Positions 4,440-39,549 of a DNA stretch of 64,000 nt are shown here, one piece after another; within the stretch, counting starts at the first letter, position 1, and the number at the start of each line of letters is the position of its first letter. The notes under the pieces are model-generated. The model made no database searches. It saw nothing but the letters and a program-made list of their open reading frames with translations, and had not been told where the DNA came from. The position numbers were made by a program, and so were the translations under genes. The DNA lies in assembly GCF_001194135.2 (NCBI RefSeq), contig NC_068982.1, positions 74,111,240 through 74,175,239 of the forward strand, in the 5' to 3' direction. Source of the stretch: Octopus bimaculoides (taxonomy: Eukaryota).

Positions 4440-4986
4440 AGTGTGTGTGTGTGTCTTTGTCTCCTCCACATTTCTTGACAACCAGGGTTGGTTTGTTTAC
4501 ATCCCTGTAACGTAGCAGTTAAGCAAAAGGATTTGATAGAATAAATATCACACTAAGTACTGGGGTCATTTTATCTTGTTTGACTAAACCCTTCATGGTC
4601 GTTCTCCAGCATGGCCATACTCAATGACTGAAAGATATTTCTGTTGAAATACATTGCCTTTGATTTGATTAATTTTGAAAATAATGAAGAATTTAGTTAA
4701 ATAATGATGTCATTATTAAGTTGGAGTTTGGAATCTAAATTAACAAGAAATTTTGATGGAAGATTTTTATTTAGAGCATTTTAAAACTTGAAGTTTGTAT
4801 CATAGTACCTGATGCAGTTTCAGGTGGGTTGATATCAAAAGATTTAACTTGGACACCCTGTTCTCAGGTGTCTTGCTGTAGAGGAGGTACATAGCTACCC
4901 TAGCAAGAAAGAGAGAAATGATGGTGGAGATAATGTATCAGGGTGAACGCTCAGGTAATTGTATAATTAGATACCTATGGGCATAG

Positions 4987-7952: not shown

Positions 7953-8018
7953 ATGGCTGCTGCAGATGATGTACGGTTTGAAGCAGCTAGTGTTTTGGCA
8001 CAGATTTATGAAAAGCAG
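7953..8018 (+). CDS. MAU2: MAU2 exon (66 nt) [22 protein letters not shown]
   Basis: Aligns to MAU2 IPQFEDVKFEAASLLSELYCQE with the same length. Acceptor aaag follows TCCTTAAT; donor gtaggt. Confidence 0.9.
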
Positions 8019-14000: not shown

Positions 14001-16557
14001 TTGCTCTATCTCTCTTTCATTCTCTCACTCCCTCTCTATCTGGTGTAAAATGTGACTGGTTGTTGTTGTTGGCACTCCGTTGCTTACGACGTCGAGGGTT
14101 CCAGTTGATCCGATCAACGGAACAACCTGCTCGTGAAATTAACGTGCAAGTGGCTGAGCACTCCACGGACACGTGCACCTTTAACGTAGTTCTCGGGGGA
14201 TATTCAGCGTGACACAGTGACAAGGCTGATCCTTTGAATTACAGGCACAACAGAAACATGAAGTAAGAGTGAGAGAAAGTTGTGGTGAAAGAGTACAGCA
14301 GGGTTCGTAACCATCCCCTGCCGGAGTCTCGTGGAGCTTTAGGTGTTTTTGCTCAATAAACACTCACAACGCCCGGTCTGGGAATCGAAACCGCGATCCT
14401 ATGGCTGCCATTGTGCCTCCACTAACGTGACTGGAAAAATAAATCAGCCAACATTTATATTGAATTATATTATATGCAGATGCTTTTCTAAAAACAAAAA
14501 TGTATATCAGTAGAATGGAGCATAATCTAATGTTTGTTTTAATTAAATATTTAATTCTCTTAGCCCTTTTGATATCAACTCACCTGAGAATGAATGCCTC
14601 TGGCTCTATGATGCAAACTTCCTGTTTTGAAGTGATCTCAATTAAAAGCTTTCCATCAAAATTACATGTTAATTTGTACTCTAAACACCAGCCTAATAAC
14701 GACTGAGTTGTTTTACTAAATTTTTCATTATTTTCAAATTTTGAAATGAAGGAAGTGTACTTCAGTAGAAATACAATAATGAAAGGGTTAATATCTCCTG
14801 TTAATTATTAATCAATTAATTCTTATTTCAGTATCAGAAATCAGTTAATTTAATGCCAAATCAGTTGTTTTTTAATTTTTTGTTCTCTTTCAGGTAAAAA
14901 GTGTAAAACCATGTTTAAAACAGTTACAACAGAGTATACAAACAGTTACCCAGTTACATTCAGATGATGGTAAGTTGAAAAAAATTTTTTTTATTTAAAA
15001 TTGAAAGATGATTAATAGAACTAAAGACATTAAACTATTTAGACATGACTCTATATTTAAAATCCAGTGTTATTTTATTATCATGAGATACCATTGATGC
15101 GTCTAATTCATTGATCATATATCATTTTCATCCTTGTTTAATGTCCACTTTTCCATGCTTGCATTGGTCACACAGAATTTTGTTGAGACAGATTTTCTTC
15201 AGCCAGGTGCCCTTTCTGTTTCCAAGCAAAGTAATATTTCCCCATGGTTAGACATGTTTTTCTTAGAAGACTGGAAACCAACAATATTGCTTGTGTGATG
15301 GTGGTGTGCTCATTTACAATCATCCCAATGTTATGACAAGAGACCCCCCCCACACACACACACACACATATTGGGTCATCCCATAAATAATGTGGTTTTG
15401 TCAATTGCATAAACTAAGTCAGACAGGAATGGGATAAACTGCCTGCATCAACTTGATAGAAAAGCAGATAGTAATTTTACCTTTTCTTTATTCTTAGTGC
15501 AAGTTTTGGAGAGTGCAGTTGAATTTTTAAAGTTATTTTTTTCAAAGCTATAATGGAAGTGATAAAGGAGCATATTTTGCTTTATGAGTTCAATAAAGGC
15601 AACAACACAACAGAATGTGCGAGGAATATTAATGCAGTATATGGGAATCAGACAGTAAGTGCAAGCCAGTGTCAACGGTAGTTCCAGAAGTTCTGAGAAA
15701 GAAACTACAGCCTAGAAGATGAGCCTTGTCCTGGAAGATATGTAGAGCTTGGCGAGGACGTCCTACAAACCCTGATGGAATAAAATCCCATTGTAACTGT
15801 TGAACTAGCAGAGAAACTTGGATTTGTTATTCAACCATTCATCAACACCTGCATACCATCGGAAAAGTCAACAAATTGGGTCAATGGGTTCCTCACAAAC
15901 TTTCCGAGTCTAATCATGCGCAGAGAGTGAATGTGTGCTCTTTTTTGGACTGAATAGTGGTTGGTGATGGAAAAATGGGTTCTCAAGTGCCATTGACAGT
16001 GGTTAGGGAAAGGAGAAACAGTGGCACCCCAGGCTAAAGAAGGTCTTCATCCATGTAAGTTGTTATCTGTTTGGTGGGATATGAAGGGTTTAGTCCAATT
16101 TGAACATTTAAACCCAAATGATAACAAAGGAGATCTACTGCTAGCAGTTTGAGTGGCTCAAGTTGGCACGAGAAGAAAAACAACCATCTTTGGTTTTGAA
16201 ACAAAAGATGTTCTTCCATCAGGATAATGCTTGGCTACATATAGCTAGAATAACATTCCAAAGGCTGGAGCAGTTCGAATGGGAAACGATACCCTACTTG
16301 GACATTGCCCCATCTGATTATCGTTTATTCTGCAATCCTCAAAATCATTTGGACAGAAAAAATATAAATTCTGTAGACAAGGTCAGAACAGCACTAGAAG
16401 AGTATTTTTTGTCATGGACAAGTAGACTTTTGAAGAGGGGCCTTGCAAGTCTACCAGATAGGTGGAAAATGAAGGAGAGTATATTTTAGATTAAAAAAGA
16501 ACTTTATCTTAATTTTGAAAAATAAAAGTATAAAAAAAACATTATTTATGGGATGAC

Positions 16558-16603
<46 letters not shown>

Positions 16604-16676
16604 TTTGCAGGGATATACTATCCAAGCAGATATCATGTTTGCTCTCAGTTTGGTTCCATTCTCATTATTATTAATG

Positions 16677-16719
<43 letters not shown>

Positions 16720-18805
16720 CAACTGACAGTCTGTCAGTTACTACAAAGTGGGTTCCAGTTGATACAATCAACAGAACAGCCTGCTCATGAAATTAACATG
16801 CAAACGGCTGAGCACTCCACAGACACGTGTACCCTTAACATAGTTCTCAGGAAGCTTCAGCATGATAAAGAATGTGATAGGGCTGGTCCTTTGAAATACA
16901 AGTACTACTCATTTTTGCTAGCTGAGTGGACTGAAGCAACATGAAACGAAGTCAAAAATTGAACTCACGACCTCATGTTCATGAGCTGAATATCCTTACC
17001 TCTAAGCCTATATATACACACCCACAAAACAGAAAAATGAAATTCTTTGGTATTATTTTATCTCCATTACACATGTACCAAAAAATTTCCATTTTCTTGT
17101 TTTGTTATTCAGCAACTGTGCAAATAATATTTCCATAATTCTCAATTTTAATGTGTTTTGATCTACATACAACAATGACTATGGATGGATACATATTGAT
17201 TATGATAATGGAATAAGCAGATGTGCTCCAAGAGGAAACAGGTGGGAGTTATCCTAAACACTTATTTATATTTACACACACATATGATAGGCTTGTAGTT
17301 TTTGGCTACCAGATTCACTCACAATACTTTGGTCAGTCTGTCAGTCTGGGGTTATGGAAAACCCCAATAGGGGGTGCTATAAAATCGCTTTGATGTTTTA
17401 ACATTTTTTTCCTCAAGCAAGAATTTTTCTTAGTGGCAGATTGCAGTGAAAATGCCCTTTTCTCAGGTCAATGTGTTGGAAATATATTTAAATTGACTGC
17501 AAAGTTTGTTTATTGAAAAAAGAAAAAGAAAATTCAATATCAGACAAGAATTTCTCTGTTCTGCTTCATATGTATATAAAACTGTGTTGCAAGTTTTTTT
17601 GATGATGTGTTTCCTGGTTTTTTCAGAACCACTTTCTAGCAACCAGATAGACCAGTTCCAATGGTTACCCAAAGAACATATGTGTGTCTTAGTTTATCTT
17701 GTGAGTATGACTGAGAATTTTATTTGATACCCCATACTGACTTGAACTCAAATCATTTAGATTTTTTTTTTTCTGAAATGATATTTAGATATTGGTTATT
17801 GATTAAAGTTGTATTAACCATTGATTACATTGGTCTAAAGTTTCATTAAAAATTCATTATATCATGAAAATCAATCAATTTCAGGTATTGATCATTCATT
17901 ATCGGTTCAATATTTGTTTAGCATTGTGTATGAAGTATTGACTATATTTCTTGACTATCACAAACAGTGATTTTATTGAGAACAAAAGCACCACTGATAC
18001 CACCACCAACAACATCGTCATCATCAACATCGCCATCATAATTGTCATCTTCATCATAATCATTTTACATCTTTTCATGATGGCATGTGTTGGAAATGTT
18101 TTCATGGCTTGAGTCAGTTCTTGTTTGGAGGTTACTGCTCTCCAAATGGGTGGGTGGTATCATATTTTACTTTATGTTCCATTTTGAATGCTGCTACACA
18201 GCATCCTTTGCTAGGGAATCAGCTTGATGATATACCCACAAAGAAAGTTCATGCCTTCTCTACCTCCCTGAAACAACACTTGTTTTTTTTAAATTGCTAC
18301 AATTTAATGAGAGAACATCCTCTGAAATCTGACAAGTGATTCATAGAGTGAGGTTGAATATACATTTGGCATGCATTAGATCTCCCCTGGGGAAAATATC
18401 TGTCTGGCAGTGGTTTCATTATATGTTAGTCAGCTGACCCATCAACAATGTGGATGTATATATTCATGGGTCTATGTGGTATACTGTATAATTTGTAATA
18501 AATGTAACATATCTTACATTGGTAGCAACTTCTACAGACTGCACATCTATCATTAAAGATTATCATTATCACTTTAATGTCTATTTTACTATGCTTGCAT
18601 GGGTTGGATGAAGTTTGTTGAGGCAGCTATTCTACTCCCAGATGCTCTTCCTGTTACCAACCCTCACCTGCTTCCAAGCAAGATTGTATTTCCTCATGGC
18701 TAGTCATGTTTCACATTGGAATGTTGGAAACAAAGGGCATCAGTATAGTGACAAACGTTTGCAACTATTATGCAGTGTCAAAATAATGAGACAGACAGAT
18801 AGACA

Positions 18806-18844
<39 letters not shown>

Positions 18845-19871
18845 TCATTCATCTAGGTCGACTAACAATGTGAAGTGAAACACCTTGCCTAAAGACACTG
18901 CTCCCCGGTTCAGGAATTGAACCCATGACATGATGATCATGAGACTAACACCCTGTTGTTGTTGTCAGCACTCCATCGCTTATGGCGTTGAGGGTTCCAG
19001 TTGATCCGATCAACGGAACAGCCTGCTCGTGAAATTAATGTGCAAGTGGCTGAGCACTCCACAGACACGTGTACCCTTAACGCAGTTCTTGGGGATATTC
19101 AGTGTGACACAGTATGACAAGGCTGACCCTTTGAATTATAGGCACAACAGATACAGGAAGTAAGAATGAGAGAAAGTTGTGGTGGAAGAGTACAGCAGGG
19201 TTCGCCACCATCCCCTGCCAGAGCCTCGTGGAGCTTTAGGTGTTTTCGCTCTATAAACACTCACAACGCCCGGTCTGGGAATTGAAACCGCGATCCTATG
19301 ACCGCGAGTCTGCTGCCCCAACCACTGGGCCATTGCGCTTCCACATGACTAACACCCTAACCCCTTCACATATATATGACTGTCTTAAGCCTTATTACTT
19401 TAATTCAAAATACTTGACATTAACTGATATATCATCATCCTTATTTAACATCCGCTTTCCATGCTGGCATGATCAAACAATGGGTAAGTCAACTCTGTAT
19501 GTCTCTAACATCACTGTTGCTATTCTCTCCCTTCCACAGGTTACAGTGATGCATTCCATGCAGGCGGGCTACATGGACAAAGCACAAAAATATACTGACA
19601 AAGCTCTCATGCAGATTGAAAAATTAAAAAGTAATTATGTTTTCATTATTTTGCATTTTATATTTTTGTATGTGCAAGAATCTTTTACTTATTTCTGTCA
19701 TGTGACCGCCACCTTGAGTTTTACTTGAATAAATCGACCCCAGAACTTTTTTTTGAGCCTGGTACTTATTCAACCAATTTTATTTTGCTGAACTGCTAAG
19801 TTATGAGGATGTAAAGATACCAACACTGGTTGTCAAGCTGTGGTCACACACACACACATACATACATACAT

Positions 19872-19934
<63 letters not shown>

Positions 19935-20619
19935 NNNNNNNNNNNNNNNNNNNNNNNNNNNNNNNNNNNNNNNNNNNNNNNNNNNNNNNNNNNNNNNNNN
20001 NNNNNNNNNNNNNNNNNNNNNNNNNNNNNNNNNNNNNNNNNNNNNNNNNNNNNNNNNNNNNNNNNNNNNNNNNNNNNNNNNNNNNNNNNNNNNNNNNNNN
20101 NNNNNNNNNNNNNNNNNNNNNNNNNNNNNNNNNNNNNNNNNNNNNNNNNNNNNNNNNNNNNNNNNNNNNNNNNNNNNNNNNNNNNNNNNNNNNNNNNNNN
20201 NNNNNNNNNNNNNNNNNNNNNNNNNNNNNNNNNNNNNNNNNNNNNNNNNNNNNNNNNNNNNNNNNNNNNNNNNNNNNNNNNNNNNNNNNNNNNNNNNNNN
20301 NNNNNNNNNNNNNNNNNNNNNNNNNNNNNNNNNNNNNNNNNNNNNNNNNNNNNNNNNNNNNNNNNNNNNNNNNNNNNNNNNNNNNNNNNNNNNNNNNNNN
20401 NNNNNNNNNNNNNNNNNNNNNNNNNNNNNNNNNNNNNNNNNNNNNNNNNNNNNNNNNNNNNNNNNNNNNNNNNNNNNNNNNNNNNNNNNNNNNNNNNNNN
20501 NNNNNNNNNNNNNNNNNNNNNNNNNNNNNNNNNNNNNNNNNNNNNNNNNNNNNNNNNNNNNNNNNNNNNNNNNNNNNNNNNNNNNNNNNNNNNNNNNNNN
20601 NNNNNNNNNNNNNNNNNNN

Positions 20620-20660
<41 letters not shown>

Positions 20661-22783
20661 ATGTTTGTCCCCCAACATTGCTTGACAACAGATGCTGGTG
20701 TGTTTACGTCTCCCGTAACTTAGCGGTTCAGCAAAAGAGAACGATAGAATAAGTACTAGGCTTACAAAGAATGAGTCCTGTGGTTGATTTGCTCAACTGA
20801 AGGCGGTGCTCCAGCATGGCCGCAGTCAAATGACTGAAGCAAGTAAAAGAGAGGAAGAGTTTCGTCCCTTCGCTACCTGAAGTCGTTCAGTTTTGCATTT
20901 TTCACTGGGTACAACTGTTTATTCACATTCCAATCCATACAGCCTCCTGTTACTGTTCAGTCACCATTTCTTCTTTCAACTACTAAATTCTCAGACCTCA
21001 TTTAGAATATTAATTGCATTAAAGCTGGAGTCCATTCACCCTGCCCAACTTTTATGCACTGTCAAAGCTACATGGAACTGTCCTAGATTCAATAGTAAGA
21101 AATACTTATTTTGAGCTGTTCCCTCTATTAGGCTCTAATCCTTCTGTTGTTTTTTAATGTACTAAAACCTTTCTGAATGCAACGTATTTTCCTGCCTATT
21201 TCTATTATAAAACCCTTCTTTTTTTTGCCTCTTCAGTGCTGGACGCCCATCCACTCTTATCATCATTCCAACTGATGCTGCTTGAACACATCGTCATGTG
21301 TCGTCTAATAATGGGCAGTAAGTCTGCCGCCATCCAAGAAGTAAGTCAACTAATTTTCCAAGATTGTTTTCTCTTTTTCTATATTCCAGGGTCGTTGCCA
21401 GTGCCCCTGGACTGGCTCATGTGCGGGCGACACATGAATTCTTTCGAGCGGGATCGTGCCAGAGCCCCTGGACTGGCTCATGTGCGGGCGACGCCCCTGG
21501 GCCGGCTCTTGTGCGGGTGACACATGAGGTTTTTCAAGCAGGATCGTTGCGGGTGCCCCTGGACTGGCTCATGTGCGGGCAACACATGAAATCCTTCGAG
21601 CGAGATCGTTGCCAGTGACCCTGGACTGGCTCTTGTGCGGGTGACACATGAAATGTTTTGAGCGGGATNNNNNNNNNNNNNNNNNNNNNNNNNNNNNNNN
21701 NNNNNNNNNNNNNNNNNNNNNNNNNNNNNNNNNNNNNNNNNNNNNNNNNNNNNNNNNNNNNNNNNNNNNNNNNNNNNNNNNNNNNNNNNNNNNNNNNNNN
21801 NNNNNNNNNNNNNNNNNNNNNNNNNNNNNNNNNNNNNNNNNNNNNNNNNNNNNNNNNNNNNNNNNNNNNNNNNNNNNNNNNNNNNNNNNNNNNNNNNNNN
21901 NNNNNNNNNNNNNNNNNNNNNNNNNNNNNNNNNNNNNNNNNNNNNNNNNNNNNNNNNNNNNNNNNNNNNNNNNNNNNNNNNNNNNNNNNNNNNNNNNNNN
22001 NNNNNNNNNNNNNNNNNNNNNNNNNNNNNNNNNNNNNNNNNNNNNNNNNNNNNNNNNNNNNNNNNNNNNNNNNNNNNNNNNNNNNNNNNNNNNNNNNNNN
22101 NNNNNNNNNNNNNNNNNNNNNNNNNNNNNNNNNNNNNNNNNNNNNNNNNNNNNNNNNNNNNNNNNNNNNNNNNNNNNNNNNNNNNNNNGCGAGATGAGCG
22201 TGGCCTTTGCCAGTACCGCCTGACTGGCCTTCGTGCGGGTGACACGTAAAAGCACCCACTACACTCTCTGAGTGGTTGGTGTTAGGAAGGGCATCCAGCT
22301 GTAGAAACTCTGCCAAATTAGATTGGAGCCTGGTGTTGCCATCCATTTTCACCAGTCCTCAGTCAAATCGTCCAACCCATGTTAGCATGGAAGGCGGACG
22401 TTAAACGATGATGATGATGATGATCTGTATCCTTTGGTGTTTCATTTACAGCGATATAGGACAGTTCACGATAATGTTTAGATCAATAAAAAGGAGATTA
22501 GTAATATGGGACAGTTAATGTCAATAATACTGTTAGAAAAAGAGCTTTGTTCTTATATATGTCAAACATATGGGTTTAGATAGTCATGTAATGTCACTTG
22601 CTTCTGATAGGACACTTTGGGGGAAGAACCCAGGACTCTAACCCCATGAGCTTCCAAGGAATAGTGGGTGGTGAAAATGAATGGATATTTGTCAAATTCT
22701 AGGGTTGTGTAATTCTGTAGTTTCATAGAGAGAGGATGAGTGAGTCATGCTACCACAGAAAACCAGCATTAAACAAATGAACT

Positions 22784-22833
<50 letters not shown>

Positions 22834-25800
22834 CACACACACACACATGTAAAAAGTATGGATTATGTAACAAAATCAGACAGTAGATATATCAGGTGGG
22901 TTTGTTGTCTTAGAATAGGCTGAGAAATGAATTTCACATGTGGATGACTCTAAAATTTTGTTTGTTGACAAGTTTTCTTTTGAGATTCTCTTAGAATCTT
23001 GTTAATTAATATTGATTAAAAACAAAATCTGGTGCCTTTTAAACCACATCTCATGTTGACTGTTCGGTCCTTCAAGTACAACAAAGGACTTATAAAAAAA
23101 TCCTGTTGCTAAGAACAGAAGTTGCTGCATCACCTTGTTGCAGATATTTTGGGTTATTGAGTGAAGGAGGAATTAGATCAGAGTTATTTTATAGTTGATA
23201 TAATGGTGAAATTTCAGAGCACTATGAAGACATTTCTAGGATTCTGTCATCCAAACCAAATCTGTTTGTAAATTAGCGCACTTATATAATGAGTTGTAAT
23301 TTAATGACTGTGTTCTATAGTGGTATAAGATGAACCATTTCATAGGTTCTGATGGGTCCAAGGGCCACATTGTGTGGCACCATGTAAAAGCACCCAGTGC
23401 ACTCTAGTGATTGGCCCGAGGAAAGGCATCTAGCTGTAGAAACCATGCCAAATCATACTGGACTCTGGTGCAACACCCTACCCGCTCTGGCTACACTGTC
23501 CAACCCATGCCAGCATGGACAACGGATGTTTGGCCACACTGTCCAAAACAGATGTTAATTGATGATGATGATGTCTGTTTTTGACATGGTTTCTACAGCT
23601 GGTTGACCTTCTTAAAACCAACTGCTTTACTGTGTGTATTGGGTGCTTTTTCATGCTACCAGCACTTGGCAAGGTCACCATGCAGCTTTCAAAACTATGA
23701 ACCCTGATCCTGAGGGAGCAGATTTATAATAGATGAGGGATTAAAGTGTGAGAGAAGGGGCTAGAGTAGGGTGGGTTTCTTACTGTAGAGGAGCTACATG
23801 ACTACATACAGTTTAGAAAAGAGAATAGGAGTGATTGTGGACCCTTGAGGTATGAAGTGAGTTGAAACAGAAGAATCAGGAGTGTGGGGGTGTATGGGAT
23901 TATGAGAGGTGGGAAATGGATGAGGAGGTGAATTTAATGAAGGAAGAACAACTGTTGTGAGAGTTGGATCTAGTAAATGATGGATAAGGGTTAGCAGGGG
24001 TGATTAATGTTGCATGAGTGTGTTTGTGTGTGTGTGAAAAGCACCATAATAATAACCGTATAATATTTTAAATATTAACCCATTACCTCCCATAATTCTA
24101 TTAACTGGAATTTTTTTTATAAAACTTTGATTTCTAGCATAAAACAGCCTTAGAAACATTTCAAAATAAACATTTTAAATAGAAATAAGCGAGATATTGG
24201 GTGAAAAATTAGCAGACCTCATTTGAATATCGGAGAAATATACCTAGTAGATATAGCAAAAAGGTTAGATATGTGTAAATATTGATAGATAATTACGAAA
24301 TTTGTAATTTTTAAGTGATCTCATATGAGATCACTAGTAGGTAATGGGTTAATGTAATGATTATAATAATAATAATAATAATATTTATTTGCATTTTCTG
24401 TCTCCTTTCAGATCTTCCAGGCTTGTAATGTCTGCCAACAACAACCCAGGTTATTTTCAACTCATGGAGCTCAAATACACACACTATTAGTGAGTGACCT
24501 GTCTTTAGTTATTTTCTACTTCTTTGTTGTTTGTTTTATTTAACTCATATACACATATTATGTGTATATATTTGTATCTGTGTGAATGTTTTACATTCTG
24601 TGCTGAGCTGAGCTGCAGATGGTATTGTTGGTTGACATTAACCTCATCAACAAATTACCCAGTAGCTTTGCGCTCTTGAAGATAAGTTGATTGAAAACTC
24701 CCTTATTTGAAAAACAGATAAGGATTAGAAACAGGAAGGGCATCCAGCTGCAGAATAATCCCTTGGTTATATGTATTCATCTAACACAGGGGTTCTCAAC
24801 CAGAGTCCATAGGGCACTTGAGGGTCCATATAAGATTTTGTTGTTAAAATTTATCTGCAATAAATTGGTTATACTTTTACAATACACAAAATATATATTT
24901 TTTTAATGCAATTCCTAATAATTTTTAATTATAAAAAAAATATAATAGGATATTTTTAAACATTGCATGACCAGTAGGGACCAGGAGGTAAAATAGGGAT
25001 CAAAAGGGGTCTGTAGGCAAAACAAATGATTGAGAACCACTGATCTAACCCATGACAACATGGAAAAACAGATGTAAAACAAACAAATTAATGTCACAAC
25101 TTGATATTTTTTCCTGTTTAAGGATAAGACATACTTATTGGACATAAAGGTAACATTCACTGAAACACATGCACACACACAACATAAAAGCTTTTCATGT
25201 ACTTTTATTAATATTTTCTGTCTTTTCCTTCCTTCTAGGGCCTTTATGCTATGTCTATGAACTGTATGGAGGCAGCAGAGTCACAGTTTAATACAGCTTT
25301 TAAAGTAAGTTTTCTGCTGCAAATTCAACCTTCATTTATGTTAGGCAAAAATTCTGTAGATGTTACATCTTATGTTTTTTTTCTTTGTCTTTTTTTTGGG
25401 GGGGGGGCTAATTCACTGATGTTATATTCTCTAGAATTTCTCTTTCAATGAAGTGATATTCAGTTTTAAGAATCAAAGTAAAATGATGTTCCACTGTATA
25501 AATTTAAGAATAAGGGAGTTGCTATGTGGTTGACTAACCTGCTAGAAATAATAGTTAAATTTCCCTAAACTGAAACTCTAACATTTTGATATGGAATGCT
25601 TGGACACCTCAGCTAAAGTAGTCCTCTGTATATTTTGTTAAAAGATGGTTGAAATGTCATCAATTGATCAGACATCTGCTTGGTTTAAACAGCTACAACT
25701 GTTGTTGCTGGACCAGTGTTGAGACAAAATTAAAATGAAATGTACCAAGTATCTCTTATTGGTAGAACTATCTTCTTTAAATCTTCATTTGGAAGAAATC

Positions 25801-28800
25801 TGATCTGTTGAATGTGTTAACTAGAGTATGGTACAAGAGCCATTTCCTCTCTTTGATGTTGTTTCCTCATCACAGAACTGTAAGGTAGGCAAGTCACACA
25901 AGTTGCCTCTGCGGAACAAAAGGTAAAATTGATCTTCAATAAAATTCATAGAAAATAAGCTTTTTAAGATTTGCTTTAATGTTCAAAACAGAAATATTTA
26001 TTCATCTGCCACATTAAATGCAGGCATTGATTTAGTAACAATTGGGTGAACTTTACATATATATTCATTTCAAATTTTGGCACCAGGCCAGCAATTTCAG
26101 AGGAAGGGAAAATGGATTACGTTGACCCCAGTGCCCAACTGGTACTTATTTTATTGACCCCAGAAAGATGTAAAACAAAGTCGACCTTGGTGGTATTTGA
26201 ACTCAGAAGGTGAACTCTGGTGGCATTTGAACTCAGAAGGTGAAGTCTGGTGGTATTTGAACTCAGACGAATGAAATGCTGCTAAGCATTTTACCTGGAT
26301 GCTAGTAATTCTACCAGCTTGCGACCTTAACTTTAAATATATTGACTTCACTTGGCTAACTACAGTCTGGTTTGTTGTTGAACTTTGATTATTTCTGATC
26401 TAGCAGACTTATTAAATATGTTTCAGACCTAAATCATCAGCATCATCATTTGTACATATCTCGGACTACATTATCCACGATGTGGACAAAATAGGTTTTA
26501 GCTTCTATTTCTAGTAGGTGTCAAGCAATCACATAATGGTTCCTTTACTGTCTTTTGTAAATAGATGAGAGGCATCATTAGTTGAGTGTGTGAGCTGACC
26601 CAAATATTTTTCTGTTTAACTTTTCATTTTCATCATTTTGTTTCTTTTTTTTTTATCCTTGCAGCTTTCTACCGATGTAGATTTAAGAACATTTGTAAAA
26701 CTGAACCTTGCTATTGTATATTTACGAACAAATAGACAAACAGATTTAATAAGTCTTCTGGAAACAGTAGTTTCACCCCAGAAGGTTTCTCCTTCCACGT
26801 AAGTTATATTTTTCAACTGTTCTTTATTTCCATAAGCATAAATTTTAGTTAATGAGTTTTTATCTCATAAAGCTAGTAAACATTTAAATACAAAATAATC
26901 GTAAAATTGTTGTTTTCAACACCTGACTTGAATTGTTATGAATTATGTAGCCCAACATTAATCCCTACATTCAGTTCTTCCATCCCAGAATGTCAGAGCT
27001 GTCTGGAACACTCTCCCTGCTCATGTCTTTTGTGCAGATTTTGAATTACAAAGGTTCAAGAGGAGTATTAAACCTTTTGTTATCACATTTCTGTTGAAAT
27101 ACAATGCCTTTGCTTCAATTGATTTTGAAAATAATAAAGAATTTAGTAAAATAAATTTGTCATTATTAAGCTGGTATCTGGAACATTAAGATTAACATGA
27201 AATTTGGATGGAAGGTTTTTGTTTAGATCACCTTAAAATAAGAAGTTTATATCTTAGAACCAGGCCAGTCTTGGGTGAGTTGGTGTTAAAAGGGTTAGCT
27301 TGGAATTTAAATGAAGGACAGTTGTAATGTTGATTGTTTAACAAGATGGCAATCAGGTGCATAACAGTGGCCAAACACATTTGTTCTTGCGAGTCACTGC
27401 TTTGATGGTGTTTATCTTGCTCGAATATGTATTGTTTTCAACACAAGTCTATGGAAAAAGTTTATCTTAGACAATTACACAGCATCAGGCCTTCTAATGG
27501 TGTATATACATATACTATGATATATATACATGGCAATTTTAATTTAATGCTATAATCATTTTCTCCTCCTCTCCTCTTCATCCCCTTCTCCTCTTCATCC
27601 CCTCCTCTCCTCTTCATCCCCTCCTCTCCTCTTCATTCCTCCTCCTCCCTCCTCCTCTCCTCTTCATTCCTCCTCCTCTCCTCTTCATCCCTCCTCCTCT
27701 CCTCTTCATCCCTCCTCCTCTCCTCTTCATCCCTCCTCCCTCCTTTGTTTTATATAGCTGTCATTAATTATTTCTTAATGTGCTGTTTCTAGAGATAGAA
27801 GGTTGTCAACAGACAGTGAAGTAATGAGCCGAATCGGGTATGTATAATAACCATCTTATTGGAATAAAAATTATATTAAAAGTTGTAATGACAGAATATT
27901 GTTTTGAGAAGATCTTTAAGCAATGCAGATGAAGTTAGGTACAATATATAAGAGATGTCAATAAATGAAGACAAAGACAAGCTATTGTATTACCTTGAAT
28001 AAGTTGTTCAATAATGTTCTTATTACATATTGGGAGTGATTTCCCTTATCAAATGTAAGAGAGAAAATAATCCAAGAGTTCAGAGAAAAAGTCTATTACC
28101 AGTAGGCCATTCTGGTGTGTTTATGAGGCTTCAAGCAAATTAGTTATCTGAAGGATTTTGTATTTTCTAGTTCAGCATGGATGTAAATTGAGTTAACTTG
28201 TATACATGGAATCAAAAAGGGATTGTCTTAAAAATATAAAATAAACTGTAAATAAAAGTAATTTTTCTAGAGGCAACTATAAACTTTTTGGAGACAGTTA
28301 TTGACAATACAGTTCTGTATTTAAGAGATGAGGAATTATGTACATTATTTACAATTGACGGATATTTGTCCTCATCTTGCTTGTTGTTAACCCATGTTCG
28401 AAATTTCCCCAAGACACCTGATGAAGGCTGGAGGGTATATCAGCCAAAACATTATGTTAACAACAAACAAGATGAGGTCAAATATCCGTCAATTGTAAAT
28501 AATGTAAATAAAGTTATTGACAAGTCTATTTCGTATCATTTTCAGAAAAAAAAAATTATTGTTGAGGTTTTAAAAATTTGTTTTATATTCTATCTAACCC
28601 TTTAGCATTCACATTATTCTATCAAAAGTAATGCTTCATGCATAATTTTGTAGCTCTAAGATTTTGATGAGGTAACTTAATTTTTAGAATGACATTGTAG
28701 AGTTGGTGTAAGAGGCCAGAGCTGGCCAGTTTGAGCATAAAACGGGTGGAATATTTTGGAAAAAAAAATATTTTAGATTAGCTTAATATGCTCATGTACA

Positions 28801-31800
28801 AAAATGGATTTAAAATATTAATTAAAAACATTGCTGGATGACTGTAAAATTCACATTGGTAAGAAAGAAACACATATAAGAAAGTGAATGAATAGATTTT
28901 AAGTGCCTCAGTAATGCAACCCAATGCCCCCGCAAAGAAGCCTTTGGTGTTTCTTGAAATTAACTTTTCTCAAGATTAATTTTTGCTTCACTGTTTCTTT
29001 CATCTATTTGTTCTTGATAAAATTTGCCTTAATCTTATTTTCAGCTCGCACAGTTTACGGGCTTCTGCATTTTATGTTCGTGGATTGCAGGCATTCTTTC
29101 AGGCAGGCTATAATGAAGCCAAGTAAGTAATGTTGTTTAAAATGAAACTTGTGGTTTTAGCCTTTAGGATTCAGATAACTCTGTCATATGCAATGCTTAT
29201 TTATTGACTTTGTTTTTAATAAATCATGCATTATCTTGAAGCTTTGAGTTTTTGACAATGTGATTGTTTAGTTTTAGAATGACTTTGTAGGATAGTGTGA
29301 GAGGCCAAATCTGGCTGGTTTGAACATAAAACAATATTTGGGCTGAATATGGCTGGTTTAAACGCTAAAAGGTTTTAAAAACAGTATTTTAAAGGGAAAA
29401 AAAGCATGAAAAATGATTACTTCCCAAGTTAATTGGCTGTGTTAATTATTTATTTTCTGCTGTATCAAAATTTTGGCTTGGTTTCTACAGCTGGATGCCC
29501 TTCTTAATGCCAACCACTCTACAGAGTGCACTGGGTACCTTTTATGTGTCACTGACTTGGGTGCCCTTTACATGTCACTGGCGCTGGCCATGATCACGAT
29601 TTCACTTAGTTTGATGTGTCTTCCTAAGCACAGCAAATTGCAAGAAGTCTTGGTCTCTTTGTGAGATTCAACAAGTGAAGATCATATTTCACCAACTCAT
29701 CTCTCATATTCCTCATAGAGATCATTAAGGTCAATGGATTAAGTAGAATGAGTGACAAACAAAATAAGTTCCTACATTTAGTTTCATACCTTCATGTTAT
29801 AATGCCAGTTCTCTTAATGTGCATCATTAATTTTTTTTAATGTATGACTGTGAGACCTTATTTTTATATAGGCTTTGTGGTTATATAAGCAATTAACAGT
29901 AATGAGGTTTTGTGTTTATAAAAGCGATTAATACTCATGAAGTGTTTTGTTTATATATATAAGCAATCAATATTGATGTTTAATCTTTGTAGAAATAAAT
30001 ATGTGGTATGTTGAATTGAGTTTGTGACTGTGATCAAGAGAAGTTCACCACACAATTCCCTATTTTCTCAAACTATTGTTTTAAAACTATCTTCTTTTTG
30101 GTTGAATTTGCTTTAAAATCAAAGATAAAAATAGAATGGTTATAAAATTTAGGGTACTAGATTACTTATTGATTGGTCAGGAGGTAATATTTTATTATCC
30201 TTTGTAGCATACTGCTCAACAAGGTACATAACTCTTGTTCCACACTGATTAAAAAAAAAAATACCCTCAAATCTGTCTTGCTTCTTCACAGTTAAATTTT
30301 TGATAGTAGGAAATATCTTCAACTGTAAAAACAATTATTCCAACTTAAAAAAAAAAAAAAGAATCTGTTTATGCAGGTATTGGAAAATGGATGTAAAATA
30401 GTAAAAAAAAAAGATAAGTTGAAAGTTTATATTTTCTAGACATGAAGTGTGCTGTGGTGATGTAAAATTATTGTAGCTAATCACCATAGATAATTTAGAA
30501 CTTGACTTTAATCTGTTCTTTTAACCATTTTCTTTCATTTATTTCATTTGGAGAAAGGCATGAATGTCATATAATTGTTTGCTCTTCCCTATAAATTTTA
30601 ATATTTATGACTTTTTCTCAACTCATATTCTTCATACACTTGCAGTCCCTCTAACTGTCACAGCTATTACGAGGTTAGATAAATCATTTTGTCATAGTTC
30701 AAAGCAGGTCTAGAAAATTGAAATTGAAGAAATTTAAAGAAAAAGTTGCATAGAACTTGCATTTGTTTTTGTTTACTTCATACAACGTTCATAAAAATCA
30801 TTGGTTATCATGAAGCATTATTTCATTCTTTTTAGAAGTGATCATCTGCATGACATAACCTCTGGCTTATTAAACATTTTATGAAGTGAGACATTTCATC
30901 AAAGATGGAAAACGTCTGGAAGAAATTCATAGAATATGCTTTTCTTTTCCCTACTTAGAATGGTAGTAGGCAGCGAGCTGGCAGAATCGTTAGCACGCCA
31001 GGCGAAATGCTTAGTGGTATTTTGTCTGCCGTTACGTTCTTTGCCTTTCATCCTTTTGGGATCGATAAATTAAGTACCAGTTACGCACTGGGGTCGATGT
31101 AATCGACTTAATCCGTTCGTCTGTCCTTGTTTGTTCCCTCTATGTTTAGCCCCTTGTGGGCAATAAAGAAATAAGAATGGTAGTAGTTAAGTGGGAAAAT
31201 TGATAAAAGTATTGTAGTTATTCTCTTCTTGTATTTGGTTTTGTTAACCTGTATTTCTTTATCTCTGTATTTTTTCTTCAGACGCTACCTACGCGAGACG
31301 CTGAAAATGGCCAATGCTGAAGACTTAAATCGTTTAACATCATGTTCACTGGTTTTATTAGGGCATATATTTTTATCATTAGGAAATAGCAGGGTAAATA
31401 TAATTTGGCTTCATTATTTTCTGTTATTTTTGTTCTTTTGCTATTTTTGAAAATTTATTCCACTTTTTCTGTTTACGGTCTTTTGACATTTTTTTATATC
31501 ATGATTGGTGTACATTATTTATTGTCAGGGATTACAAGTAACTGACAGATCAATCATTGGTTCACTGTATTTATGTTGGTGGCAGTGATAAGGGATTGTA
31601 ATATACTGATAATATACTAGTGTCACTCAGTTGCTGATATTTTATCACTACTATTTTTAAAAAAGAAAAACAGTATGAACATGTGGTTCCCCTAATGGGT
31701 ACAGCTATTACAAGGGAGATAATTATTTTGTCATTATATAAAATGGGATTAGAAACTTGAAATTGAAATTATGGAAATTTCAGGAAAAAATTGCAAAGAA

Positions 31801-34800
31801 TTCACTTATTTTAGGCGCAGGAGTGGCTGTGTGGTAAGTAGCTTGCTTACCAACCACATGGTTCCGGATTCAGTCCCACTGCGTGGCACCTTGGGCAAGT
31901 GTCTTCTACTATAGCCTCGGGCCAACCAAAGCCTTGTGAGTAGATTTGGTAGACAGAAACTGAAAGAAGCCTGTCGTATATATGTGTGTGTGTGTATATA
32001 TATATATGTTTGTGTGTTTGTGTGTCTGTGTTTGTCCCCCCACCATCGCTTGACAACCGATGCTGGTGTGTTTACGTCCCCATAACTTAGCGGTTCGGAA
32101 AAAAGAGGCCGATAGAATAAGTACTAGGCTTACAAAGAATAAGTCCTGGGGTTGATTTTCTCGACTTAAGGCGGTGCTCCAGCATGGCCGCAGTTAAATG
32201 ACTGAAACAAGTAAAAGAGTAAATGAGTTCTTTAACTTTTTTTTACTTAATATGAATTTCTTGAAATTCTTATAAAAACAACAGGATGAGTCAGCAAGGC
32301 TGCTCAACCTGCTAGAAATAGTTAGTAAAATTTCTTCTTGTCTTAATGAAGTACAAGGATAATGTAGTCTGAGATGTGGAAAGTCATGTCTAGAGTCTCT
32401 ATGAATATGATGCAGCTGGATCAGAGTGGATCTGGGTTCAACAGCAACAAATAAAGCTGTGACTAATCAAAAGAAGTCAGTATGTTTGAAGTTTACAAAA
32501 TGTTACTAAATCAGTGCCAGTGTTTTATGTGGCAAACAAATCTTAAGATGTTAGTTTTGTATAAATCTTATTGAGGTCCAACTTTGCCTTTCATTCTACC
32601 CAAAATCAATAAAATAAGGATCTATCATACACAGAAGTTGATCCAGTCAGCAATACCCACCCCCGTTTTTACCCATATAAGAAATCTTGACTTATAATGT
32701 CTGCTTTCTGTCTCTTCTTTTAACCTTTTCTGCTGAGTTTAAGGCTGTGAGCTGGCAGAATTGGTACCACGCTAGGCAAAATGCCTTGTGACATTTTGTC
32801 TGTCTTTACATTCTGAGTTCAAATGCCACTGTGGTTGACTTTGCCTTTCATCCTTTCAGGATTGATAAAATAAATCACTGGGGTTGATGTAATTGATTGC
32901 TCCCTTCTACCAAATATGCCTATAATATGAAAGATTATTATTATTATTGTTGTTGTTGTTGTTGTTTTGATTCAAATTCTGGTCGAAAGCCAGTGATTTT
33001 AATGGGGAAAGGGAAATTTGTTACATTGATCCTGAAAAGATGAAAGGCAAAGCTGACCTTGGTGGTGTTGGAACTCAAAACATAGAACTGGAAGAAATGC
33101 TGCTAGGTATTTTGTCTGATGTACTAACAACTTTATCAATTTGTCTTTATCATCATTGTTAGAAGAATCATTAGCATGTCAGAGAGAATTTTTAGTGGTA
33201 TTTCTTCCAGCTCTTTATGTTCTTAGTTCAAATTCTGCTGAGATGATGTTTAAGAAAGAACTAATAGAACCCAAAATTTCATCCCAGACAAATCCAAACA
33301 GTAAAGCCCTACTTTAGTTATCCATTTCTTCTATATATTTCTCTAGGAATAGTTCTCTCTGCTATCATCTGCTATGTTTATTTTCTGTTGCAGGAAGCCA
33401 TGAACATGGTAACTCCAGCCATGCAGTTGGCTGGTAAAATCCCGGATGTACATGTTCAGCTCTGGGCCTCTTCATTACTCAAAGGTAATTTTACATGTTT
33501 TAATTAAGTTTGTATTACCTAATGAGGGAAGTTACTCTTTCCAGTTTTCTTTACCTTCTCCCTATTGTTTTTTTTTCTTTGTTTTGGTTTACTTATATTT
33601 TTCTGTGGTGTCCAAACATCTTTATGCTCTGACATCTTGTCAGCTATGTCTCTATCTTCTTCCCAGTGTGGTAGCCATATATCTCCTCTAAAGCAAGACA
33701 CCTCTAGTTGTTCCACACCTCCCATAAAGCCACCTACCCTTGTAGGCTTTTCCTTTGTCTTGCAAGTTACTTGATGACTTTAACTCATACTGATCACACA
33801 GGAAAAATCACCCAATACACTCTGTAAAGTGGTTGGCATTAGGAAAGGCATCCAGCTGTAGAAACCAGGCCAAACCAGACACTGGAGTCCAATGCAGTCA
33901 TCTGGCTTATTGGATCCTGTGAAAACATCCAACCCATGCCAGCATGGAAGACATGCATTGAATGGTGATGTTAATATATTTTGGATCATTGCCACCGCAT
34001 TCATTCATTTATCTATTTAATATCTAACTTCCCATTCTAGTATAGACTTTCATCATTTTAACCCTTTTGATAGCAATCCACTCATGACTACCCTTGGTTC
34101 CATGATACAAATTTCCTGTCTAAAAGATACCTAGATTAAAGCCTTTTTTTTCCAAACACCAGCTAAATAACAGCAAAGTTGTTTTACTAATTTAATTGAA
34201 ACATTGACAGTGTATTTAAAAAATAGTGTTAATACCTCTTTTTCCACTTTGGCATGAGTTGTACAAATTTGAAATAAAATCTCTTTCTATATATTGTGAT
34301 TTTAAACAGAACAATCATATGATGTTTACTTTTAAACCTTGTCAGAACAATTCACAACTATGAACCACTGTCATGTAGATATGAAATGTGTTATGTTTCA
34401 GCATTCTGGCTCTTGTCCTGTCATCATTGTAACACGATTCTGCCATAAGCTCCAGGATTTTAAACATTTGGTCCCAATTTTAAAGCTGGCGAAGAATTTA
34501 TTGAGGAAGATATGGCTGCAATATTGAGAGACAATGTGATTTGAAGTAATATTTGTTGTTGGGTTACTCTTGTGTTAACCTTGATTGAGCACAGCTATGA
34601 TAGACATAAAGATACTTGATCAAACAGTTGTGCTCCACTGATCCATATCTTCTATACAGGTAGCATCTGCCTAGCTGAAAAATCCCATGTTAATCATATG
34701 GATGTTGTGTGACAGTCTAGACATCGTTGTGGTAGTGTTGATGATGATTGTGTTGCTATTTCTAATTACTGTTGATGTGCTTAATTTCATACTGTTTTTT

Positions 34801-36724
34801 TTTCTTCTGTATTGTAGACCTATATCGTTTGTGTGGGGACCAGGTAAAAGAGGCCGAAGGTTACAGGATGCACACCAGCTTTTCTCAAGATCTCCTTAAA
34901 GATCATTTTCAGTCATCACAGTTATCTGAACATGGCTTAATACAAGTAAGTATGAATAAAAGCACTCATGCTCACAAGTGCTTAAACATAACTATGGCTT
35001 AGGCACTTCACCACACATTTTTTATTTTTTTTATTAGTTTCTGTGACCCTTCAAGCCTGATTGAGAATGATGTTTATTTTCAGCATCTAGTGTTGGGTAC
35101 ATGGAGTGTGGCCAATGGAGATTAATGAAAGAGGAGCTGTAGGGTTAGCGGGATGTAATTTTCTGGTTCAGAGGAGCAGATATTGTTTTGTCAGGGTTAG
35201 AAGAGGCAGAGATAATAAAAGAAAATGTTTGTGAATCATAGCACCGCCCTTGCTAAATCAGTTTTTGGATATGATGGATGTTTGTGTGAGTATGGAGTAG
35301 CATCACTGTATCAAATATGTGGTTGATAACGGCAATGTAGTATATCTGTGGAGCTGTAGTAATGTTCCAGATACATGAATAGTAGTGTGTGTGTACAGCC
35401 TTATCTTAACATCATGTGATGATTGTAAATGTGTATCATTGTGTTACAAAGCAATGTTTGTTTCTAGTTTTCTGTGAAAAATGCTTGGAAACAGATGAGG
35501 GTTGGCAACAGGAAGGGCATCTGGCCATAGAGAATCTATCTCCAGAAATTCCGCCTGGAAAAGGCATGAAAAAGTAGATGCTAAATGATGCTGTTAATAA
35601 TATTCTAATGTCAGTGTGCATACTCGACAGAGTGTTAATACCTTGAGAGAAAAGTTGGGCCTAAGAAGTATGAGTTGTGGTGTGCAAGAGAGACGATTGC
35701 GCTGGTATGCTCATGTGGCGAGAATGGATGAGGATAGCTGTGTGAAAAACTGCCACAGCCTAGCAGTTGAGGGTACCTGTGGAAGAGGTCGACCCAGGAA
35801 GACCTGGGATGAGGTAGTGAAGCACGACCTTCGAACTTTAGGCCTCACCGAGGCAATGACTAGTGACCGAGACCTTTGGAAATATGCTGTGTGTGAGAAG
35901 ACCTGGCAAGACAAGTGAGACCATAACCCGTGGCCTTTACCAGGGGTGTAGCCAGCCCACTTATGCGTACCTTTCCTTCTTTGGACACAAATCCCTGCTT
36001 GCGAAGACCTGTTGAGGCAAGTGAAATCGAAATCGAACCAAATTCGGCGACTGGCACCCATGCCAACCTTCTTTCATTGGACACTAAACNNNNNNNNNNN
36101 NNNNNNNNNNNNNNNNNNNNNNNNNNNNNNNNNNNNNNNNNNNNNNNNNNNNNNNNNNNNNNNNNNNNNNNNNNNNNNNNNNNNNNNNNNNNNNNNNNNN
36201 NNNNNNNNNNNNNNNNNNNNNNNNNNNNNNNNNNNNNNNNNNNNNNNNNNNNNNNNNNNNNNNNNNNNNNNNNNNNNNNNNNNNNNNNNNNNNNNNNNNN
36301 NNNNNNNNNNNNNNNNNNNNNNNNNNNNNNNNNNNNNNNNNNNNNNNNNNNNNNNNNNNNNNNNNNNNNNNNNNNNNNNNNNNNNNNNNNNNNNNNNNNN
36401 NNNNNNNNNNNNNNNNNNNNNNNNNNNNNNNNNNNNNNNNNNNNNNNNNNNNNNNNNNNNNNNNNNNNNNNNNNNNNNNNNNNNNNNNNNNNNNNNNNNN
36501 NNNNNNNNNNNNNNNNNNNNNNNNNNNNNNNNNNNNACTCTGCCAGATCAGATTGGAGCTTGGTGCAGCCATCTGGTTCGCCAGTCCTCAGTCAAATCGT
36601 CCAACCCATGCTAGCATGGAAAGCAGACGTTAAACGATTATGTATGTATGTATGTATGTGTGTGTGTGTGTCTGTGGTAGCAATACTGCCTTGGATATGT
36701 GAGCAGTATTCCAAAGCTCTCTGT

Positions 36725-36761
<37 letters not shown>

Positions 36762-38855
36762 CATCACTACTCACTCAGCTGTTGTAATTATGAGAATATA
36801 ACTATACATATTTGATGTGCAATGTCAGTGTACATGTGTGACAGTGCTGAGGGAAATGTTGTATTGAGGGAAATGTTGGGGATAAGATGAATTAAATGCA
36901 GTGTGCAAGAGAGAAGACTGCACTTGTTTGGTTATGTGATGCATATGTATGTGGACACTTGTATACAGAAGTGCTGATCACTTAAAATGGATGGATCTTG
37001 TGGAGGAGGGAGACTCAGGAAGACTTGGGATGAAGTATTGAAAGCCGATCTCAAGACACTGCACCTTACAAAGGAGATGACTAAGGGACTGAGATATCTG
37101 ATGCATTGCTGTACTCAAGAAAACACATCCACCATGGCAGAATTAATACTACTGCTGGTGCCACATAAAAGGCTCCTGATACACTCTGTGGAGTGGTTGA
37201 CATTAGAAAAGACATCCAGCTGTAGAAACCATGCCAGAACAGAAATTGCTTAGATGGTGAGTAGGGCATGCTGGGCCAGCTATAATTGGTCTAGTTGTAA
37301 ATCTTTTGGATATAGCACTTTTATGTATTCACTTCCTTGTTCTTTTACTGCCTGTTGAATATCTTCTGACTTATGTATTTTAGGTAAGCTGTAAAAGTTA
37401 CTGGGTTTTGGTTCGAAATTGGTGATGTAGTCTCTTTCGTTGTCAGTGAGTGAGTTGTAATGTTTAGAAACTAGGTGGTTGATCTTCATGATGTGGTGGT
37501 CTATATTCGAGGGTATTTCACAATAGAAGGTTGTATCCTTTAGTTGCTCCTCAACTAAATCCTTGTAGTATTCCACATCTATGATAACGATTGCACCCCC
37601 TTTATCTGCTTGTTTAATTATTATTGTTTCATCGTTTTATATGCGTTTAAGTGCAGATATCTCTGATTTGTTAATGTTCGGCCTAACTTTGGTATTTTGT
37701 TTTAGGGGGAAGTTTGATAGGGTGTCAATNNNNNNNNNNNNNNNNNNNNNNNNNNNNNNNNNNNNNNNNNNNNNNNNNNNNNNNNNNNNNNNNNNNNNNN
37801 NNNNNNNNNNNNNNNNNNNNNNNNNNNNNNNNNNNNNNNNNNNNNNNNNNNNNNNNNNNNNNNNNNNNNNNNNNNNNNNNNNNNNNNNNNNNNNNNNNNN
37901 NNNNNNNNNNNNNNNNNNNNNNNNNNNNNNNNNNNNNNNNNNNNNNNNNNNNNNNNNNNNNNNNNNNNNNNNNNNNNNNNNNNNNNNNNNNNNNNNNNNN
38001 NNNNNNNNNNNNNNTATTGGTGGTGAAGAATTCCACAAGTCGTAACTTGCGACAGAATTTCTGGATATCTTCCTTTAGTTCATGGTGGTTGACTGTTGAT
38101 GTAGGTGTAAATTTCAGGCCTTTTAACAGAAGTTGGGTTTTATCATTGTCAAGATCTCTTCTGGAAAGATTAATTATCTTAGGATCTATATGTCCAGTTG
38201 TTTTGGGTATGTTTCCTCTTGGGATGTTTCTTTCTCTGGTGTTTGTTGTCCTGACATTAAAAAATGAATTTTTTTTTTCTGTTTGTGGTTTCTATTTTTG
38301 TTGGTGTTGACTTAAAGTTTGTGTTTTCGTTGTGTTATTTTACCTGGCGTTGTTATGTTTTCCGTCCTATTTTCAGAATTATACATCTTCCTTTTCAATT
38401 TGTTAGTATTGGTTTTAATGATCTGAGAGGATGGTCTAGTATTGTGTCTGGTTCTAGGTCGGTTTTTTGCCCAGTTTTTTGTAAGTTGTCTTTGTTGAGG
38501 CTTTGAAAATGATCTGTCGTTCCTACGTCTAATGGTCTGATCAGAGAAATATTTATTTTGTTCATGTTCTTTGTTTATAATGTGTACATTAGGGTCTTTG
38601 CGTACAAAAAGAGAAGAGTTCTTACTGTAGTTCCTCTTTGATTCCTGGTGGAATGGGCGTTCATGTTGCCTCATGCTCTGGCTTTTGTTACGTTGGTGAA
38701 ATTGTTCTTTTTTACTGTTATTTCTCTGGGTTCTAAATTCTTTACCGTAGTTGGTAGAATATTTATCCAGGAACAGTTGTTTCTGCTGCCATAATTTTCT
38801 TAATTTGTTCTCTTCTCTGGAGATATCTTTTTATATTTTAAAAAATTTTTATTCA

Positions 38856-38891
<36 letters not shown>

Positions 38892-39515
38892 AATTTGCAC
38901 GAAGCGTAATGATGCTTAATAAGCATCTACCTGCTAGAAATAAGAGCTAAGTCTTAAATTAATCCACCGTAGCGCACCAATATAACAGAAAAACAGTATG
39001 CGAGGAAAACAAAGAATTAAAACATTTAAACAGCACAAATAAAAATATTATGCAATTAGGGATATCCATAAACNNNNNNNNNNNNNNNNNNNNNNNNNNN
39101 NNNNNNNNNNNNNNNNNNNNNNNNNNNNNNNNNNNNNNNNNNNNNNNNNNNNNNNNNNNNNNNNNNNNNNNNNNNNNNNNNNNNNNNNNNNNNNNNNNNN
39201 NNNNNNNNNNNNNNNNNNNNNNNNNNNNNNNNNNNNNNNNNNNNNNNNNNNNNNNNNNNNNNNNNNNNNNNNNNNNNNNNNNNNNNNNNNNNNNNNNNNN
39301 NNNNNNNNNNNNNNNNNNNNNNNNNNNNNNNNNNNNNNNNNNNNNNNNNNNNNNNNNNNNNNNNNNNNNNNNNNNNNNNNNNNNNNNNNNNNNNNNNNNN
39401 NNNNNNNNNNNNNNNNNNNNNNNNNNNNNNNNNNNNNNNNNNNNNNNNNNNNNNNNNNNNNNNNNNNNNNNNNNNNNNNNNNNNNNNNNNNNNNNNNNNN
39501 NNNNNNNNNNNNNNN

Positions 39516-39549
<34 letters not shown>

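Follow-up and report, generated by a model that had tools for sequence, protein, structure and literature searches.

A 45-nucleotide coding exon of octopus MAU2, probably gained by cephalopods within an ancestral intron

The stretch of DNA analyzed here (the window; 64,000 nucleotides (nt) of Octopus bimaculoides, contig NC_068982.1 of the RefSeq assembly GCF_001194135.2, positions 74,111,240 to 74,175,239 of the forward strand) contains a large part of the gene for MAU2, the Scc4 subunit of the cohesin loader. Inside one of its introns lies a 45-nt coding exon adding 15 amino acids (aa) to the protein. An earlier note on this DNA had described this element as a candidate lineage-specific cassette exon and had interpreted it as a possibly regulated isoform with a phosphorylation motif, missing from the annotation. 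In the following, the exon is examined with respect to its splice sites, its conservation in other cephalopods, its presence in public gene models and transcripts, and its place in the protein. The coordinates of all features are given in Table 1 and refer to the first letter of the window as position 1.

The exons of the gene were located by TBLASTN with a human MAU2 sequence, which served as a probe only. Every exon call was then validated by the spliced translation, which matches XP_014777387.1 at 100%. With the 45-nt exon included, the translation is identical over 520 aa to XP_014777387.1 / UniRef100_A0A0L8GX50 (608 aa). Without counting this exon, the exon map comprises 16 exons separated by 15 introns, all of which are of the GT-AG type, while the N-terminal exons (residues 1 to ~88) were not found within the window. 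The Pfam family PF10345 (Cohesin_load) matches XP_014777387.1 as well as the gene calls of Argonauta hians and O. sinensis. Identities of the octopus protein to other homologs named MAU2 range from 63 to 81%, and orthology to metazoan MAU2 extends over the whole length. The gene product shows no difference from the octopod models and shares the all-alpha tetratricopeptide repeat (TPR) solenoid fold of the MAU2/Scc4 loader subunit.

The host intron (26799-29044) is a phase-2 intron. Translation of the spliced forms revealed that inclusion of the exon keeps the reading frame, is free of stop codons and turns ...VSPST-SHSLRAS... into a form that is longer by 15 aa, whereas stop codons are present in both other frames of the 45 nt. 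Residues 439-453 of XP_014777387.1 are encoded by the exon, whose first base is in addition the last one of the T438 codon. By reading and translating the window, the coordinates, the phase of the intron, the length of 45 nt, the stop-free inclusion, the AG and GT sites and the branch-like TTCTTAAT could all be confirmed as given in the earlier note.

To obtain a chance expectation, splice-site weight matrices were trained on the 15 introns of this gene and then applied to its complete intron sequence of 30.3 kb. In total, 25,941 AG..GT pairs of 9-300 nt were detected, of which 1,346 are frame-preserving and stop-free. Only seven pairs have two site scores at least as high as those of the 45-nt exon, which is the sole in-frame and open one among the seven. 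Its donor is typical (7.5 bits, compared to 3.1-12.0 bits for the real donors) and its acceptor is weak (3.8 bits), with higher scores for 14 of the 15 real acceptors. The window sequence alone is only suggestive and makes the exon plausible, not proven. That the exon is real follows from two lines of evidence beyond it, namely cross-species conservation and a spliced transcript.

For the conservation analysis, the region between the flanking exons was aligned for the loci of Argonauta hians and O. sinensis. The exon is identical in O. sinensis (45/45 nt) and matches at 42/45 nt in Argonauta (42751-42795 of the compared locus), where the three differences (AGG>CGG, TTG>TTA and TCA>TCT) are every one synonymous. 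AG and GT are conserved in all three genomes. In Argonauta, the acceptor reads tttttcag/ and the donor /gtttgt (a slash marks the exon-intron boundary), the remainder of the 3′ splice region having diverged. Between O. bimaculoides and Argonauta, only 14 and 11 of the 30 nt adjoining the exon on either side match, and no alignment is obtained for the remainder of the intron; a forced alignment yields 292/994 matches in the upstream half and 447/1207 in the downstream half. The downstream half is 94% identical in O. sinensis. The conservation check that the earlier note had put forward, splice sites and frame in related cephalopods, turned out positive for O. sinensis and Argonauta.

According to the Nei-Gojobori method, the proportions of synonymous (pS) and non-synonymous (pN) differences between O. 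bimaculoides and Argonauta are 3/9 and 0/33 in the exon, compared to 137/329 and 16/1171 in the other 16 MAU2 exons. If the 33 replacement sites changed at a neutral rate near 0.4, they would be expected to show about 13 changes; none was seen. Since no non-synonymous change stands against three synonymous ones, the splice sites are kept and the flanking intron has diverged, purifying selection on the amino acids of the exon is indicated. Judged from these sequence comparisons, the exon evolves like the other MAU2 coding exons, that is free at synonymous and fixed at replacement sites.

Public gene models already contain the exon. The identical 15 residues are present in the O. bimaculoides protein XP_014777387.1 / UniRef A0A0L8GX50, which is named 'MAU2 chromatid cohesion factor homolog', and the same 15 residues were found in O. 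sinensis (XP_029655691.1), O. vulgaris (CAI9717563.1 and CAI9717562.1) and Argonauta hians (GAB1597268.1). These five proteins from four octopod species form one cluster at 90% identity. No exon-skipping model exists among them, and the RefSeq names carry no isoform label. The O. vulgaris annotation was built from Iso-Seq, RNA-seq, protein alignments and ab initio prediction, with PASA updates adding alternative splice forms (doi 10.1101/2023.05.16.540928). The expectation of the earlier note that the exon would be absent from the annotation was not borne out, as it is contained in RefSeq, in UniProt and in three other octopod annotations. The exon itself is thus already known as a part of the standard MAU2 models and is not a hidden isoform. 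Between the two O. vulgaris proteins, CAI9717562.1 differs from CAI9717563.1 only by a 20-aa C-terminal extension (KSRNVEVTSLRSDDLRVDNP), which suggests an alternative 3′ end or read-through of the last exon.

Transcript evidence from a more distant cephalopod is provided by the Logan contig SRR27666074_94187 (1375 nt), which was found by a focused protein search via its 160-aa called protein. This contig is colinear with the downstream exon and the four exons after it, contains no intron and extends to the stop codon, all four downstream junctions being spliced. It reads ...RKSTDSEIMNRIG/SHSLRAS..., so that the homolog of the exon runs on into the next exon across the same junction. The encoded protein is nearest to the octopod MAU2s, with 94-95% identity versus at most 90% for the best non-cephalopod. 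The pS of this species is 0.82 to Octopus and 0.84 to Argonauta, compared to 0.40 between Octopus and Argonauta. From this equal distance it is deduced that the exon is common to a lineage outside both. At positions 1-34 of the contig, directly 5′ of the exon homolog, at least 11 consecutive Ser codons (TCA/TCG/TCC) are located, the contig breaking off within the tract. Three of the Ser codons are variants, in each case at the third position, which weakly suggests a coding repeat. The tract could either extend the loop by coded poly-Ser or stem from an intron retained in the transcript.

The lineage distribution was assessed in an alignment of 125 MAU2 sequences, consisting of the five octopod proteins and 120 others, none of which is named as cephalopod. 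The segment from LNLAIVYLR to SHSLRAS comprises 55 aa in the five octopod proteins, compared to 38 aa in 108 and 39 aa in 11 of the homologs (together 119) and 30 aa in the remaining one; the insert is absent from all of these 120 sequences. Octopod MAU2 is therefore 16-17 residues longer between the LNLAIVYLR and SHSLRA helices than the other MAU2 proteins, and 15 of these residues are contributed by the extra exon. In the gastropod Lottia gigantea, an intron of 211 nt is located at the identical codon position and in the same phase (CA/gtaagt ... tag/C TCA CAT), and no 45-nt exon was found inside it. Because this intron is empty at the same position and phase, the intron is regarded as ancestral and the exon as created inside it in the cephalopod lineage. 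These comparisons indicate that the exon is restricted to cephalopods and was gained within the ancestral phase-2 intron, in agreement with the lineage specificity assumed by the earlier note.

The exon resembles other new exons that arose inside an intron and became fixed as constitutive parts of the gene in one lineage: the position and phase of its intron are old, and it is short, a multiple of three in length and placed in a surface loop. Many young exons of this kind are repeat-derived and included at a low level, whereas no repeat origin could be detected for the octopus MAU2 exon, which is old, clearly under purifying selection and part of every model. In the literature searched, no paper was found that treats MAU2 and cephalopods together, and for this reason the lineage restriction of the exon appears to be undescribed.

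The place of the exon in the protein was analyzed with an AlphaFold2 model of XP_014777387.1, computed with the 125-sequence alignment. The model is an all-helical solenoid of ~30 helices (mean predicted local distance difference test score (pLDDT) 88, predicted template modeling score (pTM) 0.82). A Foldseek search against the PDB yielded TPR solenoids, including Scc4 in 5c6g_C (Scc2-Scc4) with a template modeling (TM) score of 0.55/0.56, and a PDB sequence search with XP_014777387.1 gave no match. Residues 430-452 form the only long internal stretch with a pLDDT <50, and the exon-encoded residues 439-453 fall almost wholly inside it, between the helices 418-429 and 455-471. This agrees with the earlier note, which had placed the insertion in the variable region directly preceding the SHSLRA helix; in the model this region is a low-confidence loop. 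According to the model, the 15 residues would convert a short turn of the TPR solenoid into a loop of ~24 residues that is probably disordered.

The loop contains RRLS, which had been proposed as a site of the protein kinase A (PKA) type. RRLS is invariant across the four octopod species and lies in the low-confidence, putatively disordered loop. The homologous position in the distant cephalopod transcript reads SRKS, with only the Arg at -2 kept, so that the strict R-R-x-S consensus is not the conserved feature. Instead, a core of R-x-S-T-D-S-E-[VI]-M-x-R-I-G is conserved across the octopods and the distant cephalopod. By kinase consensus rules, R-x-S is basic-directed and T-D-S-E acid-directed; the core is rich in Ser and Thr and still holds both. 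The constancy of its sequence makes it most likely that the loop contains a short linear motif. On the outside of the NIPBL-MAU2 loader, such a motif could be phosphorylated or serve for docking.

Taken as a whole, the data are best explained by a real MAU2 exon that is contained in every available model, was gained by cephalopods in an old phase-2 intron, is maintained by purifying selection and adds a loop to the protein, and we hold this explanation with good confidence. The exon appears to be constitutive and not a tissue-regulated on/off cassette. Some points weigh against this explanation. Constitutive inclusion is concluded from the lack of skipped models, and the weak acceptor (with a matrix derived from only 15 sites) together with the short, symmetric exon makes some skipping plausible. 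The gene models are not fully independent, as Octopus proteins may have guided those of Argonauta and partly of O. vulgaris; the comparison at the DNA level does not depend on such guidance. The distant transcript stops short of the upstream exon and thus demonstrates the use of the donor, not of the acceptor, in that species. Finally, any function of the loop is inferred, and a tolerated insertion could be conserved for structural reasons. A more radical doubt is that the exon is a chance pseudo-exon, added by gene predictors, spread between annotations by homology and not present in mRNA. The 1,346 open AG..GT segments in the MAU2 introns and the use of related proteomes as hints in some annotations would allow for this, but the absence of non-synonymous changes next to three synonymous ones and the kept splice sites, within an intron diverged beyond alignment, the homologous peptide that runs on into the next exon in the spliced transcript from a distant cephalopod, and the identical 608-aa protein in the UniRef and RefSeq entries of O. 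bimaculoides reduce its probability to nearly nil. Hardly more probable is a recent, Octopus-specific exonization of a transposable element or of the adjacent CT-rich microsatellite. The intron does contain dispersed repeats and a 182-nt CT-rich tandem repeat, which ends 48 nt upstream of the exon. However, the exon and its flanks have no other copy within the window, the expansion of the microsatellite is confined to O. bimaculoides, and the exon is older than the split of Octopus and Argonauta and common to a more distant lineage. A repeat origin was rejected, as no repeat copy overlaps the exon and the microsatellite is species-specific.

The interpretation given in the earlier note, a regulated alternative cassette (e.g., neural-specific) with both forms at meaningful levels, in which inclusion adds a PKA-type RRLS phospho-switch, has to be taken more seriously and is still considered unlikely. 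With 45 nt and phase 2 at both ends, skipping is frame-neutral, the acceptor scores below 14 of the 15 real ones, and the low-confidence loop with its RRLS, invariant in four octopod species, is suited to modification. Against this, the exon is present in all five public models of four species and skipped in none, including those of the Iso-Seq/PASA-annotated O. vulgaris, the flanking intron is not conserved between Octopus and Argonauta, the distant cephalopod has SRKS instead of RRLS, and the CT-rich tandem repeat close to the acceptor is peculiar to O. bimaculoides in its expanded form. Synonymous divergence is ordinary, with a pS of 0.33 in the exon and 0.42 in the other exons (Fisher p=0.74). 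A higher synonymous conservation of the exon was an impression that arose from two unusually diverged flanking exons and is gone across all exons. Thus, neither a skipped model nor flanking-intron conservation nor an excess of synonymous constraint speaks for a regulated isoform. The neural microexons of SRRM4/nSR100 (eMIC domain) have a core class of <=27 nt and reach up to 51 nt in a wider definition. The MAU2 exon resembles them in being short, frame-preserving and located in a surface loop of a scaffold protein, with a TGC at -11 in O. bimaculoides. It differs from the core class in its length, which fits the wider definition only, in a TGC that is not conserved even in O. sinensis, and in its unconserved flanking intron. 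No conserved UGC motif was found upstream of the acceptor in the three genomes: the TGC 11 nt before the acceptor in O. bimaculoides is lost in both other species, with TGT in its place in O. sinensis and, in Argonauta, no TGC closer than -54. Control of the SRRM4 type via UGC was rejected because the motif is not conserved.

Several repeats were observed in the host intron. A CT-rich tandem repeat with a 21-nt unit (TCCTCTTCATCCCTCCTCCTC) in 5.2 copies is located at 27563-27744 within a longer CTC-like tract. At its place, O. sinensis has only a remnant of ~35 nt, which identifies the repeat as a species-specific microsatellite expansion. In the downstream half, an inverted repeat (28336-28391 / 28456-28511) has arms of 56 nt that are 95% complementary and enclose a loop of 64 nt. 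This element, spanning 28336-28511, may be an insertion resembling miniature inverted-repeat transposable elements (MITE) or a long intronic hairpin, and double-stranded RNA derived from it could be an ADAR substrate in coleoids. Furthermore, two dispersed repeat families are represented in the region. The copy of the first family at ~27058-27304 has counterparts at 4637-4853, 14561-14802 (minus strand), 41842-41953 and 44940-45146, and that of the second at ~28636-28759 at 12443-12550, 29224-29332 and 43213-43336. Neither family overlaps the exon.

Elsewhere in the window, a tandem acceptor of the NAGNAG type (tatagcag/caa) was noticed at 10237/10240, before the second MAU2 exon of the window. 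The annotated protein takes the first AG (EKQQQVD), and use of the second would remove one Gln. An assembly gap (run of N) at ~2460-2730 is bordered by simple repeats of the (TA/CA)n type.

Table 1. Features of the MAU2 locus, with positions in the window
Feature	Position	Strand	Description
MAU2 gene part	7966..39743	+	17 coding exons including the 45-nt exon; encodes residues ~89-608
Upstream constitutive MAU2 exon (LSTDVDL...VSPS + AC)	26665..26798	+	ends with CAC/gtaagt
Upstream half of the ancestral phase-2 intron	26799..27792	+	holds a dispersed repeat copy and the CT-rich tandem repeat
3′ splice region of the exon	27773..27792	+	branch-like TTCTTAAT (27773-27780), short pyrimidine tract, AG; acceptor tgtttctag/
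MAU2 45-nt coding exon	27793..27837	+	AG acceptor, GT donor; phase 2 at both ends
5′ splice site of the exon, gtatgt	27838..27843	+	CGG/gtatgt
Downstream half of the ancestral phase-2 intron	27838..29044	+	holds the inverted repeat with 56-nt arms and a dispersed repeat copy
Downstream constitutive MAU2 exon	29045..29122	+	preceded by ttttcag/CTC

With its extra exon, the highly conserved loader subunit MAU2 offers a clean, small example of how an exon is gained, and a possible handle on lineage-specific regulation of the cohesin loader. That it is skipped in some tissues or stages, or that the R-x-S-T-D-S-E core serves the cohesin loader of cephalopods alone as a phospho-regulated or docking motif, is a speculation to which we give a rather low probability. 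If true, coleoids would control cohesin loading, and hence the three-dimensional organization of their genomes, at a point specific to their lineage.

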